Positions 5,356-49,819 of a DNA stretch of 64,000 bases are shown here, one piece after another (within the stretch, counting starts at the first letter, position 1; every line of letters begins with the position of its first letter). Origin of the DNA: Blepharisma stoltei ATCC 30299. Lineage: Eukaryota > Protista > Ciliophora. The notes beneath the pieces are model-generated. The model saw only the letters and a list, made by a program, of their open reading frames with translations, was not told where the DNA came from and made no database searches. The stretch is taken from NCBI GenBank assembly GCA_965603825.1, contig CBFDEM010000023.1, forward strand, positions 186,001-250,000, in the 5' to 3' direction. The position numbers and the translations under genes are program-made.

Positions 5356-5767
5356 TTATTTATTATAATTGACGTGGTGTTCATATGATTACTTGCTATT
5401 TTATAAAAGAAGTTAAAAAATACATAAATGAGAAGAATTATTTCAGCACTTGATTTCTTAATTTGATGCTTCAATTCTATTTAAAAAATGTAGGAAATTT
5501 TAATTTTCTCTAGAAATATGAGAATTAAAATAGATTAATAAAAATTATGCAACAATTTTGAATCAGCTTATATCACTCGAAAAATTGCAAATGAATTCAC
5601 TATAACAGAAGCAATAAGTATTGTAATATAAGAAAACTAGGCCAAATCTTCTTTAACTTATTATTTTTATCAATTAGAGTATTAAATCATAACTAATATG
5701 TCCAGCTATTTTTGAAATAGCTAAATAATGATATCAAAAATTATTAGAATTTAGAAGTGCAAAACGC

Positions 5768-6674
5768 GGAAAGCAGATTTTATTATTATTATTATGAGTG
5801 GTATCGCGCCCTAGGCGCCTTTAATTTTTATTTCCAAATTTCTTCTTTCAAATTCCTCCACTTATCATCAATTTTCCTGAATTTCTTAAATTTATACCAT
5901 TTCTTGAATTTACGTCGATTTTCCTTAATTTCTTTTTTTAGTTTTTCTTCAAATATTCATTTTTCCTCAGTTATTTTTAGTCTTTCCGCTGAAACTACAC
6001 ATTCTTTTTTGAGGCAGAATTTTCTTCTCAACTGATCCTGAGTCTTATCTTCAGAACATTTGCTTTTATAAAATTTCTTCTCTCTTTGTGCTTTTCGATT
6101 TATTTTCTTTTTATTTCCATATATATTTTTGAATTCCTTCATATTGCTTTTTTCGCGGCAAAACTTTCCCATGAGCTGAGCCTGAGTTCTGTCTCCAAAG
6201 CGCTTCTTTTCATCAAATTTCGCCTCTTTTTGTTCTTTTTCATCTATTTTCTTTTTATTTTTATTTTTATCCTCTTCATCTTCATATCCTTTTTCTCCAT
6301 AGTCTCATTCCACACAGTCTTCACATCCAGTGCCCTCATCTGTGTGACATAAGTCTTGTGTTACGGCAAAAAGGGTATCAGCAAATTCTGAGTCTTCAAT
6401 TTCATAATCTTCATCTTCATAATATCATTCTGAGCAGTCTTTATTTTCCCTCTCAACCCTATCACACCCTCTGCACGCAAAATCTCCATCAATTAACAGA
6501 GAGAAGGCTAGATCGACATCTCCTCTGCATAGATTTAGCGCTTCCACTGCATTTTCCATGTCAAAGCCTAAATTTGCAAGCGCTACTGCTTTTTCCAAGT
6601 TGGCATCATCCTCGACCATTTTGCCTAAGAAAAAGATGAAAATTGAAAATCCGTAATATGGAAAGCAGATTTTA
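5768..6674 (-). mobile_element. Putative retroposed / non-autonomous non-LTR cassette (~877 bp) with a 15-bp target-site duplication
   Basis: GGAAAGCAGATTTTA at 5768-5782 and 6660-6674; (TAA)5 tail on the minus strand at 5780-5794; GCGCC-CTA-GGCGC hairpin at 5806-5818; single intronless ORF inside. Confidence 0.6.
5828..6619 (-). CDS. UBA-like domain protein with an acidic/Cys middle and a Lys-rich basic C-terminus (263 aa, TGA=Trp)
   Basis: AVALANLGFDMENAVEALNLCRGDVDLAFSLL is a UBA signature; frame is open from ATG 6619 to TAA 5830-5828 when TGA is read as Trp. Confidence 0.7.
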
Positions 6675-6958
6675 AATTTCTAATAAAATGTAGTTTAATA
6701 TTTTTTATAAATTGATGATAAGTTAACCAAACCCGTTTTTATTGATTCTTTTAACTCATTTAACACCTTTATCAGTCTTCTCAGCGCATTTTCTTTTCAA
6801 ATCTTCCTGTTCCATAAGTTCTTTAAGTTCCGCACTGGTTAAATGGTAATTTTTAAGCAAAAGTCACCTCTTAAAGTTGATTTATATGATGACATTGAAT
6901 ATGTCTACACCTGCAGTTAATGCTAGTGATGCTTGTGATACTAGTGCTGTTAATTTGG

Positions 6959-7238
6959 TAGTGTTGCTAGTGTTGCTAGTGTTGCTAGTGTTGCTAGTGT
7001 TGCTAGTGTTGCTAGTGTTGCTAGTGATGCTAGTATGCTAGTTTGGTAGTATTGCTAGTGTTGCTAGTGTTGCTAGTGTTGCTAGTGTTGCTAGTGTTGC
7101 TAGTGTTGCTAGTGTTGCTAGTGTTGCTAGTGTTGCTAGTGTTACTAGTGTTGCTAGTGTTGCTAGTGTTGCTAGTGTTGCTAGTGTTGCTAGTGTTGCT
7201 AGTGTTGCTAGTGTTGCTAGTGTTGCTAGTTTTGCTAG
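6959..7238. repeat. 9-bp minisatellite (GTGTTGCTA)n, about 28-30 copies in two blocks
   Basis: Directly visible tandem array with a short degenerate interruption near 7025-7052. Confidence 0.95.
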
Positions 7239-7352
7239 AATTACTGATGGTGCTAGCTCTTGATAAAATTGCCAATATTGCTGATGGTGCAAGTGTTGCT
7301 AGTGCTGCTATTATACTGAAAAGGAACTTTATATGAGGAAAGTAATAATTGT

Positions 7353-40682: not shown

Positions 40683-41738
40683 TTATTTATTGACTATAGG
40701 ATAAGAGGGCATCATCTGTATTCCACAAAGGCCTTTACCTTCTTTGATTGCGATTCGGATGTAGCCGTCTTCACCCCAGGAAGGACCCCAAGAGTTCTTG
40801 ACGATGTAGTAAGCAGGGACTGTGGTTCTATTGAAGCCTACTACAAGGACTCCATGGTCTAGATTTGTCCCGCAGCTTTTGTCTATAACTCCACCACCAT
40901 AAAATTGCCAGGCAGCTTGGTCAGCTTGAACACCGACTGAAACTGGGCCATGAGTAAGAGCAGCAAGCAATGCAGTGCTGTTATTAGGAGTGACATCTAC
41001 ATAACCAGAAATGGTAGCAGAAACATTGGCGACTTTAGTTTGATTGCAAATTCCATCTCTCCCTGTATATTTGTAATGCTTTTCAGTAGTCAGGCCATTC
41101 TGGATTACGAACTCAAAGCCATAATCCATAAGTCCTCCATTGCAGCCTTCATTCCCATAAGACCTTGAGCAATCAATAAGTTCTTGCTCACTAAGGGACA
41201 CCAAGGTATGGTTAGCCAAAAACCAAGCTCCTTCTACAGCTCCAGTTGTAGAAAAAGCCCAGCAGCCTCCACATATTCCTTGGTTTTTCACTTTGGTTAC
41301 TGCTCCTGCTTCTCTCCAGTCAATTGCATCAGGAATTACTACATTGTTTTCTTCAGCTACCCTCTTTGTGTAGTGAGCTTGAGCCTTGGTTCCTAAATAA
41401 AGGCTCTTGAATTCTGCGAATGAGACATCAGCGAATTGGTTTGCTTTTAATACCCAGCTTCCTGCTTGTGAATTGTGAATCCTAATAAAGGCTGAGTTGT
41501 CGCGGAACACCTTAAATCTGCGGGCGTATTCTTCAGCAGTTGAATATAGCTTGTTGTGACGGGCAAGGAAATGGTTGAATTCTTCAACTTCTAGTTGAAA
41601 TTGCTGAAGTCCTGGTGAAGAGGAATTTGAAGATGTGAGAGCAATAGTGCCGACTACACAGATTATCCCAACAAGGGCAAGAGATGTGTAGAGGATTTTG
41701 GATTTCTTTGAAGAGGTATCGAAGGATAAGGAATCCAT
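40683..41738 (-). CDS. Papain-family (C1A) cathepsin L-like protease with an N-terminal TM/signal and I29 prodomain
   Basis: ERFNIN-like prodomain, QGICGGCWAFS, LDHGVLVVG, KNSWG. Confidence 0.95.
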   Translation of the reverse strand: MDSLSFDTSSKKSKILYTSLALVGIICVVGTIALTSSNSSSPGLQQFQLEVEEFNHFLARHNKLYSTAEEYARRFKVFRDNSAFIRIHNSQAGSWVLKANQFADVSFAEFKSLYLGTKAQAHYTKRVAEENNVVIPDAIDWREAGAVTKVKNQGICGGCWAFSTTGAVEGAWFLANHTLVSLSEQELIDCSRSYGNEGCNGGLMDYGFEFVIQNGLTTEKHYKYTGRDGICNQTKVANVSATISGYVDVTPNNSTALLAALTHGPVSVGVQADQAAWQFYGGGVIDKSCGTNLDHGVLVVGFNRTTVPAYYIVKNSWGPSWGEDGYIRIAIKEGKGLCGIQMMPSYPIVNK

Positions 41739-42326
41739 CTTATTTATTTTGATTCAACAAAATTGCAAGAATTAACAGACTTAGAGGTAATAGGAATGAG
41801 AAGGAGGCCAAAAGCACTGGTAAGAGATTGGAATTAGTTAGATATAGAAAAATTAAAGAAACGTGGGAAGCTTTAATCACTATTAGGCTGAAGCTGCAAA
41901 GAAAAACTCGATATCATGAAGAAGGAAGTAGAAAGATTTAATGTGATGAGAGATAGCCTTCAACCGCTTATCATTAGACCAAATAATCTTGTCATAATAA
42001 ATTTTAACTAATAGTTTTATATTTTAGGAGCATATAACGATAGCTTTTATTGCCAATTGGAGTAAAAAAACCGAATTTTTTTATATATTTAAAAATCAAT
42101 TTATATTTTGTTTTATATTAATTCTTAAAATTAAAGCAATTAGTTAATCCCAGAATAAATAGGTATGATTGCTCAAAAACCATAGCTGAAGTATAAGCGG
42201 AGATTTAATTTCTCATTCAGGCTAAGTATTTATTTTCCAAAGTGTTAATAATATGTCTTTCATTTATTTTCATAATAAAAGAAAAATTAAAAGCCAAAAT
42301 TTGAGAAGGAATCTTAACGATTAACC

Positions 42327-43424
42327 TTAAGCCTTAGTGGCATTATAAGGGTTCAGATAGAACGGGTAAGATGGGTACATCTGGATTCCACAAACACCGA
42401 CTCCATCTTCAATTCCAATTCTGATGTATCCTTGTTCTCCCCATTGAGTGCCCCAAGAGTTCTTGACAATATAGTAAGGCTTTTTCACGACAGAGTTATA
42501 TCCAACTACAAGTACTCCATGGTCTAAGTCAGTTCCGCAGTTCTTGGTCACAACTCCTCCCTTATAAAGTTGCCAAACCTTTTGGTCAGCCTGGACTGCA
42601 ACAGATACTGGATTAGTTAAGAGGCTAATTTCAAGCCATACACTGCTGTTCGAGACTGGGATCTGATATCCATCAATACGGGTGATATTTGACTGTGCTG
42701 CCAAAGTGTAGTTGCAGGTATTGTTAGTTGCTGTATAAGGATAGTTTGATTCAGAAGTCAAGCCATTTTGCTGAATAAATTCAAAAGCATTGTTCATCCA
42801 GCCGCCTTGGCAGCCAGAGTTGCCGAAGCTAAATGAGCAATCAACAAGTTCTTGCTCACTGAGGTCGATCAAAGTGTGATTGGAGATCGCCCACAAGCTT
42901 TCAACTGCTCCAGTAGCTGAAAAAGCCCAGCAGCTTCCGCATTGTCCTTGGTTCTTGACTGAGGTTACTTTGCCCCACTGTCTCCAGTCCCAAGAAGGAT
43001 AAATTTTTAGGTCACTTGGTACAGCTTTAGGAGTGGTAGTAGCTTTAAGTGCACTCTTTGGGACTTTGCTTGTGAGGTATATGCTGCCGAATTCATTGAA
43101 GGAAAGGTCAGCAAATTCATTGACTCCTAAGGTCCAGTCTTCTCCTAGGCTATTGTGGATTCTGATATAGGCTGCATTGTCACGGAAGACTTGGAATCTG
43201 TGGACGTACTCTTCAGGTGTGGAGTATTCTTTATTGTAGAGAGACATGAACTCTTGGAATTCTTGCTCTTCAAGCTGGAATTGTTGGAGGGCAAGTGAAC
43301 TTGGGCCTGAAGTTGCAAGAGCGATAGCTCCGACTATGCAAACAACCCCTATGACTGCTAGAGCTGCATATAGAGCTTTCTTCTTGTTGTTCGACTTCGA
43401 GGAATCGAAATAAAGACTTTCCAT
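42327..43424 (-). CDS. Cathepsin L-like cysteine protease
   Basis: Start MESLYFD (by paralogy); [22 protein letters not shown]. Confidence 0.95.
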   Translation of the reverse strand: MESLYFDSSKSNNKKKALYAALAVIGVVCIVGAIALATSGPSSLALQQFQLEEQEFQEFMSLYNKEYSTPEEYVHRFQVFRDNAAYIRIHNSLGEDWTLGVNEFADLSFNEFGSIYLTSKVPKSALKATTTPKAVPSDLKIYPSWDWRQWGKVTSVKNQGQCGSCWAFSATGAVESLWAISNHTLIDLSEQELVDCSFSFGNSGCQGGWMNNAFEFIQQNGLTSESNYPYTATNNTCNYTLAAQSNITRIDGYQIPVSNSSVWLEISLLTNPVSVAVQADQKVWQLYKGGVVTKNCGTDLDHGVLVVGYNSVVKKPYYIVKNSWGTQWGEQGYIRIGIEDGVGVCGIQMYPSYPFYLNPYNATKA

Positions 43425-44409
43425 TTCTATTATTAACTTCACCAGCTTACGCAAAAATGGCTTTGTAAAGATGAATTTGTTCACCGAAGATATGTCCTTA
43501 GATTGAAAAAAAGGAAAACTGATTAAGGCTTTTTTGGGCAGAAAATATATAGAAAGCTAGTAATTAATAGATAAAGAATAAGACTAGATAAAAATTGAGG
43601 AAAAATTTGATTATTATAAATTTCATTGTAAATTGTAGAAATTTTGAGGAAATGATGATATCAACTTGAAAATTCGATTGGGATGGATTTGTAAGAAAAT
43701 TAGACAGAAATTTAAAAAAATCAAATCGTATGCTTTTTTGATTTTGCTCACCTGTATAAATGGTGGAAGAATTATTTTGCTGAGATGAGAATGCTCTGGT
43801 AGATAGTTAAAAATATGTGTTGAGTAATTGGTTTGAAGCATTAAATCTATGAGCAAATCGTAAAAAATTCAATATTCCTTAAATTAGCGAGCTATGGCGC
43901 TATTGCTTGGGCAGGTTGTTTTGATGCTTGCATAATTTAGATCATAAAGGACTAAGAGAAAATACTAAATTTTATAAAATTATAAGCCAGAATAGAGAAA
44001 CGCAGCTACAAACTGAGAAGTGGCTTTGGATTTTGAGCATATTAAATTTATCTTAAAAAATTAAACCTGCAGATTATTATTTTTATTATAATTAAAGATT
44101 TATTTGAGTAGAATAGATAACGGGGAATAGTGGCTCCATCTCGAAAAATTTCTTTTCCTTCTTCATACCTATTTTTATATAGCCTTAATCACTCCATTCT
44201 ATATCCCATGAATTTTTGGCAATATAATAGCTTTTTCTTTCAATCGTATTATATCCCAAAGATGCATACATGTCTTTATATATGCGTTAATATTTCTGAT
44301 AGCAAATACTGACTAATAATCATCATCAGATCTAAATTTTGAAATCCTATTAGACTGCCTAATCGATTTTCTCAATGCAATTTTCTTGTAAAGGTATTCT
44401 GCATGCATT

Positions 44410-45210
44410 GCTAAATTATACCTGACAGCAAGCACCTATGATTCATTTCAGTCCCGCATCTCTTTGTCACCACACCTCTCTTGTAAAGCTGTCAAACTCT
44501 TAGGTCTGCATCAAGTCCAACAGAGACTGGCTGCTGACTTATAGTCCGCAGTAAATATGCGCTATTATTTAACAAAACATCTGTATAATTATCAATGCGC
44601 GCCAAAAGCTCTGCTTCTTTTTCATAATTGCCCCAGCAATCTACAAGTTCTCACTCACTTAAAGTAGGTAATGTGTGACTAACAAGGAACCAGGCGCTTT
44701 CAATAACTCCTGTACCAGAAAAAGTTCAGTAGCTTCCACAGTTTCCTTGATCTTTTACTTAGGTAACAGCTCCATGCTGTCTCCAATCCCAGGAAGCCTG
44801 ATATTCTAAGCTATTTATTTATAAAAGGTAATTCCTTGGTCTATGAGTCTCAATTCTTGTCTGAAGGAATTTATTAGAAAATTCTTCAATAGTGAGATCT
44901 GCGATTTGTTAACAAATAAAGTGAAATCTTCTTCTTGAGAATTGTGAATGCGGATATCAGCCGAATTGCTCACAGAAGATTTTGAAACAAAGTGCATATG
45001 CATAGGAAATGCGTAAGACTTGTGGTGAAGCAGCATAAAATTTTGAGCCTCTGCCTCTTCTAATTGAAATTGCTAAATTGTGATGCCATGAAGATTGTCA
45101 CTTGAAAAAGAAAAATAGTTTGCGATGCAAATTATTTCTATAAGAGTAATTAAAACATAAGCTATTTTTGCTTAGAAAATGATTGAAGAAACATAGCCAA
45201 AGTTTTCCAT
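44410..45210 (-). pseudogene. Cathepsin L pseudogene
   Basis: SWDWRQHGAVT*VKDQGNCGSYW (catalytic Cys changed to Tyr), PVSVGLDAD..WQLYKRGVVTKRCG; stops and frameshifts. Confidence 0.85.
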
Positions 45211-45310
45211 CTTTTATAAAATACTCCTTAACGCATATGTATTGATATCTTTTTTGAATAAAATATTTTCATATTATTATTTAACACACAGTTTAACGAA
45301 TAAAGCTAAA

Positions 45311-46400
45311 TTAAGGCTTAGGACTGTTATAAAGAGCTGTAGGGTATGATGGTGCCATTTGGATACCGCAAACTCCTTTTCCTTCCTGAATGCCAACTTT
45401 AATATATCCGTCTTCTCCCCATTGCGTGCCCCATGAATTCTTAACAATATAGAAAGGCTTCTTAGCAGCGGTGTTGTAGCTAACAGCAAGGACTCCGTGG
45501 TTTAAGTTAGTTCCACATTTCTTGGTGACGACTCCGCTCTTGTAGAATTGCCATGAAGTAGCATCAACGGCTACTGAAACAGGAGTCCGAAAGACAGAGG
45601 ACAATAATGAGGTTGCGTTGTTAGAGAGCACATCAGTGTAGCCAGTAATCCTCACCCACGGCATAATTACTTTCATGTAGTCGCAGGTTGAATTTGTACT
45701 GTTAGTTGAATTTCCAGATGTGTAAGGGTATTCCTTTTCAAGGGCTAGACCATATTCAAGAATATATTCGAAAGCTTGGTCCATATCTCCTCCATCGCAT
45801 CCTGCGTTTCCATAATCTTTTGAGCAATCAATAAGCTCTTGCTCACTTAAAGACACCAAAGTGTGGTTACCTGAGGCCCAAGCTCCTTCTACAGCACCAG
45901 TAGCAGAGAAAGCCCAGCAGCTTCCACATTCTCCTTGATCCTTAACTGGTGTAACAGCTCCATGCTTTCTTCAATCCCAAGTAGGTTGATAAGTAAGTTG
46001 TTCTGGGAGGATTTGAGTATGTCGGCGTTTGTTAACATCAACTCTGCGAGTGAGGTATCGGCTTTCGAATTCCCCAGAGGTGAGGTCAGCAAATTTGTTG
46101 ACAGCCAAAGACCAGTCTTCTTCAGCTGCGTTATGAATTCTGACATATGCTGAGTTTTCACGATAGATTTGGAATCTCCTTGCGTATTCCTCTTCAGAAG
46201 AGTATTTCTTGCCATAGAGGGTCATGAAGCTCTGGAACTCGGCTTTTCAAGTTGGAATTGCTTAAGTACAAGATCGTGACGATTGTCTGAAGAAAAAGCA
46301 ATAACACCAACAACACAGACAATGCCTATAGCTGCAAGGGCTGCGAGCAGTGTTTCTTCTAGTTGCTTGTTTTAGCTGAATCAAAGTAAAAACTGTCTAT
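45311..46400 (-). pseudogene. Cathepsin L copy with a decayed 5' end; intact 304-aa ORF from ATG 46225
   Basis: Relative to 47460-48560: ATG changed to ATA at 46400, a TAG and two 1-nt deletions; 46225-45311 is open with TGA=Trp and the catalytic Q/C/H/N are intact. Confidence 0.75.
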
Positions 46401-47459
46401 TATTTTTATAAAGGTTTATTTATTACGTAATGTGACTTTGTATTGCGTAATTTCTTCCCAAAGATATCAAAACACATCAGATAAAATGGCAAAATTTAAT
46501 TGATATAGACAGAATTTTTGACTTGATTCGGAAGGAATTAGAACATAGATAGCATGAAGAACTAAAGAGAAAACTAGGAAATCGAGAAATTTGTAAATTA
46601 GAATATAGTGAAGTTAAAGAATCTACAAAAGGAAAAGAATTTTAAAAAAAAATAATGCAGGAAACAACTATAAAAATAATTAAAACTACTGGGGTAATTA
46701 CTTGCAAATTGGAAAGGCTTGTCATTTTAAAATTTTTCTAAGACAAGAAAAATGATTAGGCGAAGCCGGTGATTTATATTTCAAAAATGAAGAATAAGAA
46801 AAGTTAAAAAATCAAAGATTTACTACACCTAATAACTTTTAGCTTACTAAATTCTATCTATAGGACCTTAATTTTTAAAAATTTTTATCTCTTTATCATA
46901 TATTATAATTTATTTAAATTACTATGTCTAAATCGATAATGAGTTTCAAAACTTCTCTTTTAATTTTGATAAGAGATAAAGAGATAGCTTAAATTTAGTT
47001 GCTGTATAACTGGAATATTTTGACCTAAAAGTTATGCATATTTCTAACAATTTTTATTATGAAGTTTTTAAACCCGCGAATGCTACTTAGATTGCTGGAA
47101 CCCTCTAGTTTCTATCTTCATTTGATGCACTGACTTTATCTATTTATAAGACTGGCAAATTTGTTTATGGCATGCATTTGACAGTTTTAAAAGTTAGAAC
47201 GATAAGTGATAAATTAGAAGATTCAGCAATCTAAGAATCTTCATAAGCCATATAGGAACATTTCACCTTTATGTACCAGTTAACAAAACAAGCATTTTAT
47301 GCATAACGCTTCGAAAATTGGTATATTCTATATAATAAGCTTTTTATTTGAGATTTCATAATGTATTACAAAGTTTGTATTTCAATTCAAATATTGATAT
47401 CTAATTGGGTAAGATTTTTCATATTTATATTTAACACACAGTTAACGAATAAAGCTAAA

Positions 47460-48560
47460 TTAAGCCTGAGTATAGTTAAAAGTAACCACAGGGTATGATG
47501 GTGCCATTTGGATACCGCAAACTCCTTTTCCTTGCTGAATACCAACTCTAATGTATCCTTCTTCTCCCCAAAGTGCGCCCCAGGAATTCTTAACAATATA
47601 GAAAGGCTTCTTAGCAACGGTGTTGTAGCCAACAGCGAGGACTCCGTGGTTTAATTTAGTTCCACATTTCTTGGTGACGACTCCGCTCTTGTAGAATTGC
47701 CATGAAGTAGCATCAACAGCTACTGAAACAGGAGTCCAAAAGACAGATGCCAATAATACAGTTGCGTTGTTAGGGTAGACATCAGTGTAGTTAGAAATCC
47801 AGGCAACTGCCTCTGACTCTCTCCAGTAGTTGCAGGTTGAATTTGTGGTGTTAGTACCGTTAGTTGAATTTCCAGAAACGTAAGGGTAGTTATCTTCAGT
47901 GGTTAGACCATGTTGAGCAATAAATTGGAAAGCTTGGTCCATATCTCCTCCATCGCATCCTGCATTTCCATAAGCTCTTGAGCAGTCAACAAGTTCTTGT
48001 TCACTTAAAGACACCAAAGTGTGGTTAGCCAAGAACCAGGCCCCTTCTACGGCGCCAGTAGCAGAGAAAGCCCAGCAGCTTCCACATTGTCCTTGATCTT
48101 TAACTGGTGTAACAGCTCCATGCTTTCTCCAATCCCAAGTAGGTTGATAAGTAAGTTGTTCTGGGAGGATTTGAGTATTGAGACGTCTGTGGACATCAAC
48201 TCTGTGAGTGAGGTATTTGCTTTCGAATTCCCAAGAGGTGAGGTCTGCAAATTGGTTGACAGCCAAAGACCAGTCTTCTTCGTCTGCGTTATGAATTCTG
48301 ATATATGCTGAGTTTTCACGATAGATTTGGAATCTCCTTGCGTATTCCTCTTCAGAAGAGTATTTCTTTCCATAGAGGGTCATAAAGCCTTGGAACTCAG
48401 CTTCTTCAAGTTGGAATTGCTTAAGGGCAAGATCGTGACGATTGTCTGAAGAAAAGGCAATAACACCAACAACACAGACAACGCCTATGACTGCAAGGGC
48501 TGCGAAGACTGCTTTCTTCTTGTTGCTTGTCTTATCTGAATCAAAGTAAAGACTGTCCAT
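47460..48560 (-). CDS. Cathepsin L-like cysteine protease (366 aa)
   Basis: [22 protein letters not shown]; intact ORF. Confidence 0.95.
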   Translation of the reverse strand: MDSLYFDSDKTSNKKKAVFAALAVIGVVCVVGVIAFSSDNRHDLALKQFQLEEAEFQGFMTLYGKKYSSEEEYARRFQIYRENSAYIRIHNADEEDWSLAVNQFADLTSWEFESKYLTHRVDVHRRLNTQILPEQLTYQPTWDWRKHGAVTPVKDQGQCGSCWAFSATGAVEGAWFLANHTLVSLSEQELVDCSRAYGNAGCDGGDMDQAFQFIAQHGLTTEDNYPYVSGNSTNGTNTTNSTCNYWRESEAVAWISNYTDVYPNNATVLLASVFWTPVSVAVDATSWQFYKSGVVTKKCGTKLNHGVLAVGYNTVAKKPFYIVKNSWGALWGEEGYIRVGIQQGKGVCGIQMAPSYPVVTFNYTQA

Positions 48561-49819
48561 TATTATTATAAAGGTTTATTTATTACGCAATATGGCTTTG
48601 AATTGTGGAATTTCTTCCCCAAAGATATCAGATAAACCAGATAAAATGGCAAAATTTAATATATATACCCAAAATTTTTGACTTTATTCTGAAGGAATTA
48701 AAGCATAATAAGCATAAAGAATTAAAGCAAAAAATAGGAAATTGAGAAATTTGTAAATTAGAATAAAGTGAAGTTCAATACGTCACAAAGGGAAAAAATT
48801 TTAAAAAAATTTTTACAAGAAGCAATTATAACAATAATGACAGCTACTAGGGGTAATTACTCAGAAATTGGAAAGGCTTGTCATGTTTAAAAATTTTCTC
48901 GACAAGAAAAATGGTTAGGTGAAGCTGGTGATTTTTTATTTCAAAAATGAAGACAAAGAAAAATCAGAAAATCAAAGGTTTACTATACTTAATAATTCTT
49001 AGCTAACCAAATTATCTCTAGCAGGACCTTAATTTTTAAAAATTTTTATCTCTTTATCCTATCTCATAATTTATTTAAATTACTATGTCTTAAATCGATA
49101 ATGAGTTTCAAAACTTCACTTTTTAATTTTTGATAAGTGATAGCTTAATTTAGTCGCAGTCTTACTGGAATATTTTGGCTTGAAAGCTATGCATATTTCT
49201 AACAATTTTTATTATGAAGCTTTTCTAGATCCGCAAAGGCTACTTAGATTGCTGAAACCCTCTAATTTCTATCTTCAGTTGATGCACTGATTCGATCTAT
49301 TTATAAGACTGGAAATCCGTTTATGGCATGCAATTAAAACCTCAAAAGCTGTTCAAGCTAGAACGATAAGTGAGAAATTAGAAGATAAGCAATCTAAGAA
49401 TTCGTAAACTATATAGGAGCATTTCATCTCTATGTGCCAATTAGCACAGCAAGCACTCTATACATAAAGCTTTGCATTTATTGATTATATTAAATAAATA
49501 AATTGCATTTGGCCTTAAAAAATGAGATTCTGTCCTTATTAATATGTTTTGAATCATAAATGAGATGAATATTATCTTGATTTAAGCAAGAGGTATAATC
49601 TCTATTTAATTTGTACAAATTCTGCATATTTCTTTATTATTTGCATTTAATCAGCAATCGAAATATATTGAGATTATAATCATGTTATTTTAAAAAATCG
49701 CAAGAATGACCTTAAAAAGAGCTACATCATTATTAAAGAAAACAAAAGGGTCTGCTTTTAATGAGATAGTAACTTTATTCTTAAAATTTTTAATTTCTTT
49801 GTCTGCAATTCTCAAACTT

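Follow-up and report, generated by a model that had tools for sequence, protein, structure and literature searches.

Elements of the non-LTR class can be mobilised in trans, by target-primed reverse transcription (TPRT). In HAL1, HeT-A and Ag-Sponge (PMC5786205), a single open reading frame (ORF) without reverse transcriptase (RT) is carried on a LINE 3' end, and that frame corresponds to the ORF1 protein of the autonomous partner. SINEs with LINE-derived tails have been described by a head-body-tail model, in which modular heads are joined to LINE tails, parts are exchanged, and SINEs, on that account, cannot be protein-coding (PMC5786205). LINE-mediated retrogenes and host-mRNA/LINE chimeras place a host coding sequence upon a LINE end between target-site duplications (TSDs), and RTE LINEs are characterized by microsatellite tails and by 5' template switching (10.1101/2022.11.04.512097). 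[quoted passage not shown]

The subject of the present analysis is a 0.9-kb cassette within a 64-kb stretch of B. stoltei somatic (MAC) DNA (hereafter 'the window'), which is probably a protein-coding non-autonomous retroelement that was inserted by TPRT using the ORF2 protein of a resident LINE in trans. Like the published LINEs of this organism, it has both somatic and germline residence, and it agrees with local LINE copies in its 3' end, in hairpin and tail, and in the size of its TSD; unlike them, it possesses a predicted UBA-fold ORF, is probably transcribed, and lacks the ORF2 AP endonuclease and RT, which excludes it from the autonomous (RTE/RTE-X-like) LINEs. With HAL1, HeT-A and Ag-Sponge it shares a single ORF, the absence of RT, a LINE 3' end and, presumably, mobilisation in trans, but its ORF is unlike the zinc-knuckle ORF1 encoded by those two local LINEs whose 5' ends can be read, and the UBA-headed family to which it belongs uses the tails of three LINE families. 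It resembles SINEs in its modular head, its LINE tail and its exchange of parts, whereas its head, a 263-aa ORF, removes it from the strict SINEs, whose non-coding Pol III heads derive from small RNAs; its sister at locus L059 gave no Rfam match in a scan of that locus. As in retrogenes and chimeras, a host-like coding head sits on a LINE end between TSDs, yet the UBA-headed chimera has itself spread and diversified rather than being a one-off product, and no host parent gene was found. Its microsatellite tail is like that of RTE LINEs (10.1101/2022.11.04.512097).

Organization of the cassette

The first-pass annotation of the window had described a perfect 15-bp direct repeat, a 40-nt leader, a 263-aa ORF, a GC hairpin and a (TAA)5 tail, each of which was recovered, with unchanged coordinates, as part of the following arrangement:

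6660-6674, no strand: TSD of 15 bp on the 5' side of the element, in the size class of LINE-copy TSDs (13-17 bp)
6620-6659, minus strand: AT-rich leader of 40 nt; leaders are short in relatives too (18 nt in L059)
5828-6619, minus strand: intact, intronless ORF of 263 aa with UGA as Trp, without RT or endonuclease; annotated as P0003 and covered by a probable RNA contig
6488-6613, minus strand: predicted UBA-fold head (aa 3-44), three helices with an LGF loop; common to eight loci
6266-6487, minus strand: acidic, Cys-containing linker, at which L057 switches to another head
6005-6270, minus strand: Lys-rich middle of two ~48-codon units, one of which also occurs in germline L059
5801-5874, minus strand: LINE-derived 3' end, a decayed ORF2 end with RRLGRD in the LINE frame (nhmmer, LINE-only tail profile)
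5806-5818, minus strand: terminal GC stem-loop, GCGCC-TAG-GGCGC, homologous to the stem-loop that ends LINE L009
5780-5794, minus strand: (TAA)5 microsatellite tail, its last unit within the TSD; tail unit as in L059
5768-5782, no strand: TSD of 15 bp on the 3' side of the element

The codons of the ORF occupy 6619-5831 and its stop codon 5830-5828. Its openness depends on three UGA codons (65, 105 and 221) being read as sense, a reading under which long ORFs are open as well, and in the annotated 263-aa window protein of the database (P0003) all three UGA codons are read as Trp. The Lys-rich middle contains an internal duplication of 144 nt, the units of which are 73% identical. Neither LTRs nor terminal inverted repeats were found at the cassette, nor was any RVT_1 match, and Pfam detected UBA alone in the ORF product, in agreement with the earlier statement that no RT or endonuclease is encoded; the intronless structure was likewise borne out by the gapless contig described below.

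The repeat had also been interpreted as a hallmark of LINE-type insertion. In order-3 Markov simulations, 1.87 exact repeats of at least 15 bp at 200-3000 bp spacing are expected per 64 kb, and several others are present within the window; the 15-bp repeat alone is therefore weak evidence. The interpretation retains its value in that a LINE-type end adjoins the repeat and that LINE TSDs measure 13-17 bp, and the two copies bracket head and LINE tail together. The hairpin, previously described as rare, is indeed the sole one in the window to combine an all-GC stem of 5 bp with a loop of 3-4 nt, the (TTA)5 run of the cassette is the sole such run there, and both lie at most 50 nt from the repeat.

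The folding energy of the hairpin is ordinary for its composition (z = -1.17). Across the stem-loop alignment, 94.5% of cells retain the stem and a single two-sided change occurs; the covariation, which concerns one pair (AU:6 / GC:5; 5/500 shuffles) among related sequences and involves changes that are synonymous in the LINE frame as well, is only suggestive of a kept stem. A degenerate hairpin pattern gave 10 matches and 0 in controls, and does not constitute independent support because it was derived from both sequences.

Elsewhere in the window, papain-family cysteine protease genes form a tandem cluster (40686-48800) with a recent ~2.1-kb duplication.

A 3' end shared with resident LINEs

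The somatic (MAC) assembly that was searched (41,464,486 bases, 64 contigs) contains 35 RVT_1 matches, and in several of its LINE families the 3' terminus consists of a GC hairpin and, after it, a short microsatellite. The terminal hairpin of the L009 element has the same core as that of the cassette, and RRLGRD lies in the LINE frame in both. A profile built solely from LINE-attached tails gives a modest match to the window at 5874-5801 (E = 0.022 at 41.5 Mb, the next match having E = 260), and the cassette 3' end is 73% identical to the L009 tail and 75% identical to that of L047. The LINE-derived part, ~75-100 nt in length, begins within the final portion of the ORF; the cassette was missed by plain blastn when a single LINE tail served as query, and tblastx gave no ORF2 homology in the Lys-rich part of the window. 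By these sequence comparisons, the 3' end of the cassette is homologous to that of an RT-encoding LINE of the same genome; the earlier supposition that RT elements might share this end has thus found its counterpart in the L009 family.

The 5'-truncated LINE copies of that family (63-903 bp) display TSDs of 13-17 bp that overlap their tails, in the same geometry as in the cassette, the tail unit being AAT in the window versus ATT in most of the copies. A TSD-bounded, full-length germline LINE, L063 (4.7 kb; L063:3825-8588; 14-bp TSD), which encodes a zinc-knuckle ORF1, an endonuclease and RT, sits within an annotated gene of the MAC+IES assembly.

Two other LINE remnants were observed. At L045 (G000:C58), a 63-bp insertion consists of a LINE hairpin end and tail alone, with a 17-bp TSD, and represents a minimal mobilisable end; at L016 (G000:C11, near 212-700), telomeric repeats cap a LINE copy that has been cut close to its 3' end.

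The UBA-fold head

The resemblance of the N-terminus to UBA domains, pointed out at the outset, falls short when measured by the Pfam score of the window head itself (PF00627, 20.8 bits, below the gathering cut-off of 22.4), and is upheld by a sister protein above that cut-off (P0009, 25.1 bits) and by structure prediction. The predicted head comprises helices at 3-17, 21-30 and 35-44 (pLDDT 88-89 over aa 11-40) and forms the three-helix bundle with an MGF-type loop by which UBA domains are recognized; UBA domains occupy the top rows returned by Foldseek, with probabilities of 0.97-1.0 and an rmsd to Mud1 of 0.5-0.6 A, at E-values of at least 0.15. The description of the ORF as a ubiquitin-binding cargo may accordingly be kept only in part: a UBA fold is predicted, and binding of ubiquitin may be supposed at the level of that fold.

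The eight heads are 54-73% identical, with one pair at 91%. In four distant pairs dN/dS amounts to 0.13-0.32 (p < 0.01), and in close pairs to 0.55-0.75, which is not significant, all values being based on 29-50 codons in DNA-level alignments of sequences partly picked by protein search. Protein searches, for which stop-free ORF pieces served as queries (the whole protein being record P0003), returned no relatives outside Blepharisma but generic UBA domains, and no parent gene came to light, the nearest host UBA being encoded at C40 by a USP-like gene (E of roughly 0.01-0.09).

These properties bear on a HAL1/HeT-A-like origin, in which the UBA-acidic-basic ORF would be the ORF1 (or its start) of an unseen autonomous LINE, and the cassettes its internally deleted mobile forms. 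Internally deleted LINE derivatives do exist here, in that L055 and L056 (G000 C62 and C45) join an ORF1 part of the C4 LINE to its 3' end in a HAL1-like architecture; the two LINE 5' ends that can be read, however, namely those of L063 and of the C4 LINE (which shares 91% identity in its tail with the UBA-headed locus L034), carry a zinc-knuckle ORF1 without a UBA head, and no UBA-profile match lies near any of the 35 MAC RT matches, most LINE 5' ends being judged from search coordinates. The heads are old and look constrained, as an ORF1 would be, and the Lys-rich middle could bind RNA, but long proteins with this head were found neither among 1.84 billion representatives nor among 5.8 billion proteins of 145-460 aa, and the literature search found no publication joining a UBA domain, a non-LTR retrotransposon and ORF1. 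Because the closest partner family (L009, L062) was met solely as 5'-truncated copies, an ORF1 origin of the head keeps some plausibility, and this account as a whole is considered unlikely.

Related loci in the somatic and germline genomes

Neither a second whole-cassette DNA copy nor a second instance of the exact 31-nt tail pattern was found in the MAC assembly, in which the window copy is single. Seven further MAC loci harbor a UBA-like head and/or the acidic linker, mostly joined to ends that come from two other LINE families, and tails across loci group by LINE family. TSD-flanked sister cassettes measure 0.78-0.92 kb and comprise L033 (16-bp TSD, copies 864 bp apart), L034 (13-bp TSD, copies 782 bp apart) and L059 (15-bp TSD). 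The second of these consists of the family head and linker on another LINE's tail, its last 302 nt matching the terminus of LINE L002 at 91% identity. In L051, L052, L053 and L033, the acidic linker is joined to the C-terminal zinc-finger part of the ORF2 of a third LINE family (L054); the tails of L051 and L052 are 78-80% identical to the LINE remnant L054, with one in-frame linker-ORF2 junction in common, through which a 287-codon open frame runs in L051. No TSD was found at L051-L053.

Additional relatives reside in the germline. L057, from the MAC+IES assembly, is identical to the window body and hairpin at 605/648 positions (93%) and lies inside a Cys-rich surface-protein gene, with a head that differs from that of the window and is frameshifted; its 849 bp are absent from MAC and hence germline-limited, and neither TSD nor tail was seen. 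L059, likewise germline-limited by its absence from MAC, combines a UBA head, a Lys-rich unit and an (AAT)n tail. Compared without its 432-bp nested insert, it shows 63% identity to the window over a stretch of 488 nt and 69% identity within the last 111 nt, its last 205 nt (an ORF2 end) match the end of LINE L009 at 79% identity, and it bridges the window copy and the partner LINE.

The nested 432-bp element of L059 (L059:6283-6714, minus strand; 48% GC, no long ORF, 15-bp TSD, (GTAA)n tail) has a second copy, of 82% identity, at L063:13344-13766, while G000:C64:66472-66540 matches a fragment of the element; it gave no Rfam match and looks like a separate SINE-like family. The same locus contains a pure (AAT)n tail of ~2,960 nt between element and TSD (L059:7296-10258), which may reflect reverse-transcription slippage or a long-read assembly artefact.

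L057, L059, L033 and L034 are dispersed copies with unrelated flanks. The first-pass annotation had looked to other copies with different TSDs, as now provided by L033, L034 and L059 together with the 93% identical germline copy elsewhere, and had named as the contrary outcome a single-copy syntenic gene with a 3' end shared by no RT element, which is not the situation encountered. A normal UBA gene of the host, or a one-off retrogene, with a chance 15-bp repeat around it and a tiny LINE fragment in its 3' end, is correspondingly hard to credit: although the intact ORF carries an annotation and is probably expressed, such repeats number ~2 per 64 kb by chance, and LINE fragments down to 63 bp exist (L045), the repeat encloses head and tail together, body and hairpin recur within an unrelated gene at another locus (L057), sister heads are also fused to LINE tails between TSDs, and the homologues outside Blepharisma are generic UBA domains only. 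Of the two earlier proposals, a retro-element and a retrogene with a borrowed LINE end, the non-autonomous retro-element therefore fits better and the one-off retrogene worse, since the head and LINE-tail design recurs at several loci.

Transcription and the somatic insertion site

In a probable RNA run, whose RNA status is guessed, one gapless contig extends over 5764-6578 and none covers the adjacent intergenic DNA; the cassette RNA therefore seems to include the hairpin and tail, through both of which the cassette is probably transcribed. The cassette is present in the MAC assembly, with a depth equal to that of its flanks in run X2, and this presence, together with the lack of a terminal inverted repeat, excludes a TA-bounded IES or MITIES.

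An empty site with a single copy of the repeat had been proposed as a check, and no clean joint of that kind (5782 to 6675) was seen among the contigs of four runs. In a sample that is ~4% diverged, a deep contig departs from the window at 5746 and the cassette is covered by shallow fragments alone, three variants of which (5926, 6123, 6146) are L057 alleles; this suggests that the diverged sample is without a somatic copy at the window locus. On C34 and C38, right-flank paralogues join a motif similar to the upstream one and carry no cassette there, and the alignment of the C38 paralogue spans the reconstructed empty junction at 67% identity; these are weak indications.

A long 9-bp tandem array (window 6910-7300) lies where the neighbouring gene, on the minus strand, has its 3' end, and similar arrays lie beside the C38 paralogue. 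Loose contig ends occur at TA on either side of the cassette (5745-5746 and 6670-6674; runs X6 and X12), and run X2 displays an insertion of 7 nt after 6670; IES junctions may thus flank the cassette, one of them within the TSD, with alternative excision.

That a full germline LINE occupied the locus and lost its interior by IES excision, so that its two ends were left in MAC, is a very improbable reading, for although partial excision of LINE parts as IESs is recorded in the published supplement (PMC9942856 SI) and a contig of run X2 departs from the cassette at 5831, beside the stop codon, that loose end does not start with the TA of a TA-bounded IES, the short form is also found within germline-limited sequence (L057, L059), and one junction common to several loci points to copying of the short form.

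Proposed mechanism of mobility

For a non-autonomous retroelement mobilised by a resident LINE, which is the preferred explanation, the individual steps can be outlined from established LINE biology. An AT-rich target would be nicked by the LINE endonuclease, the (UAA)n end of the cassette RNA would pair with the nicked strand, the hairpin end would be recognised by ORF2p and the RNA then copied, and a staggered second nick would give rise to the 15-bp TSD. The mosaics L057 and L034 suggest that heads and tails are swapped by RT template switching or recombination and, with less assurance, the window copy may be found in the soma as the result of an escape from IES excision, its near relatives being germline-limited.

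The UBA-acidic-basic protein would most likely serve as an ORF1-like, RNA-binding helper of its element in cis. It is also conceivable, as a distinctly tentative extension, that these elements constitute a self-standing lineage of protein-coding LINE parasites, in which a captured UBA-fold gene is under selection because its product helps the element, for instance by bringing ubiquitinated partners to the retrotransposition complex or by shielding that complex from silencing or turnover, and which survives by moving onto the 3' ends of whichever LINE family is active.

Implications

While the presence of LINEs in the B. stoltei MAC has already been published, the short UBA-headed family is apparently undescribed in the literature searched. 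A UBA-fold head apparently unrelated to the local ORF1s, in combination with tails drawn from three families of LINEs, would represent a new design among the non-autonomous LINE derivatives, and would directly link ubiquitin biology with retrotransposition. The pairing of somatic and germline-limited copies that are 93% identical is useful for examining why some insertions escape IES excision, and some of the annotated 'UBA domain-containing' proteins of Blepharisma are products of mobile elements.
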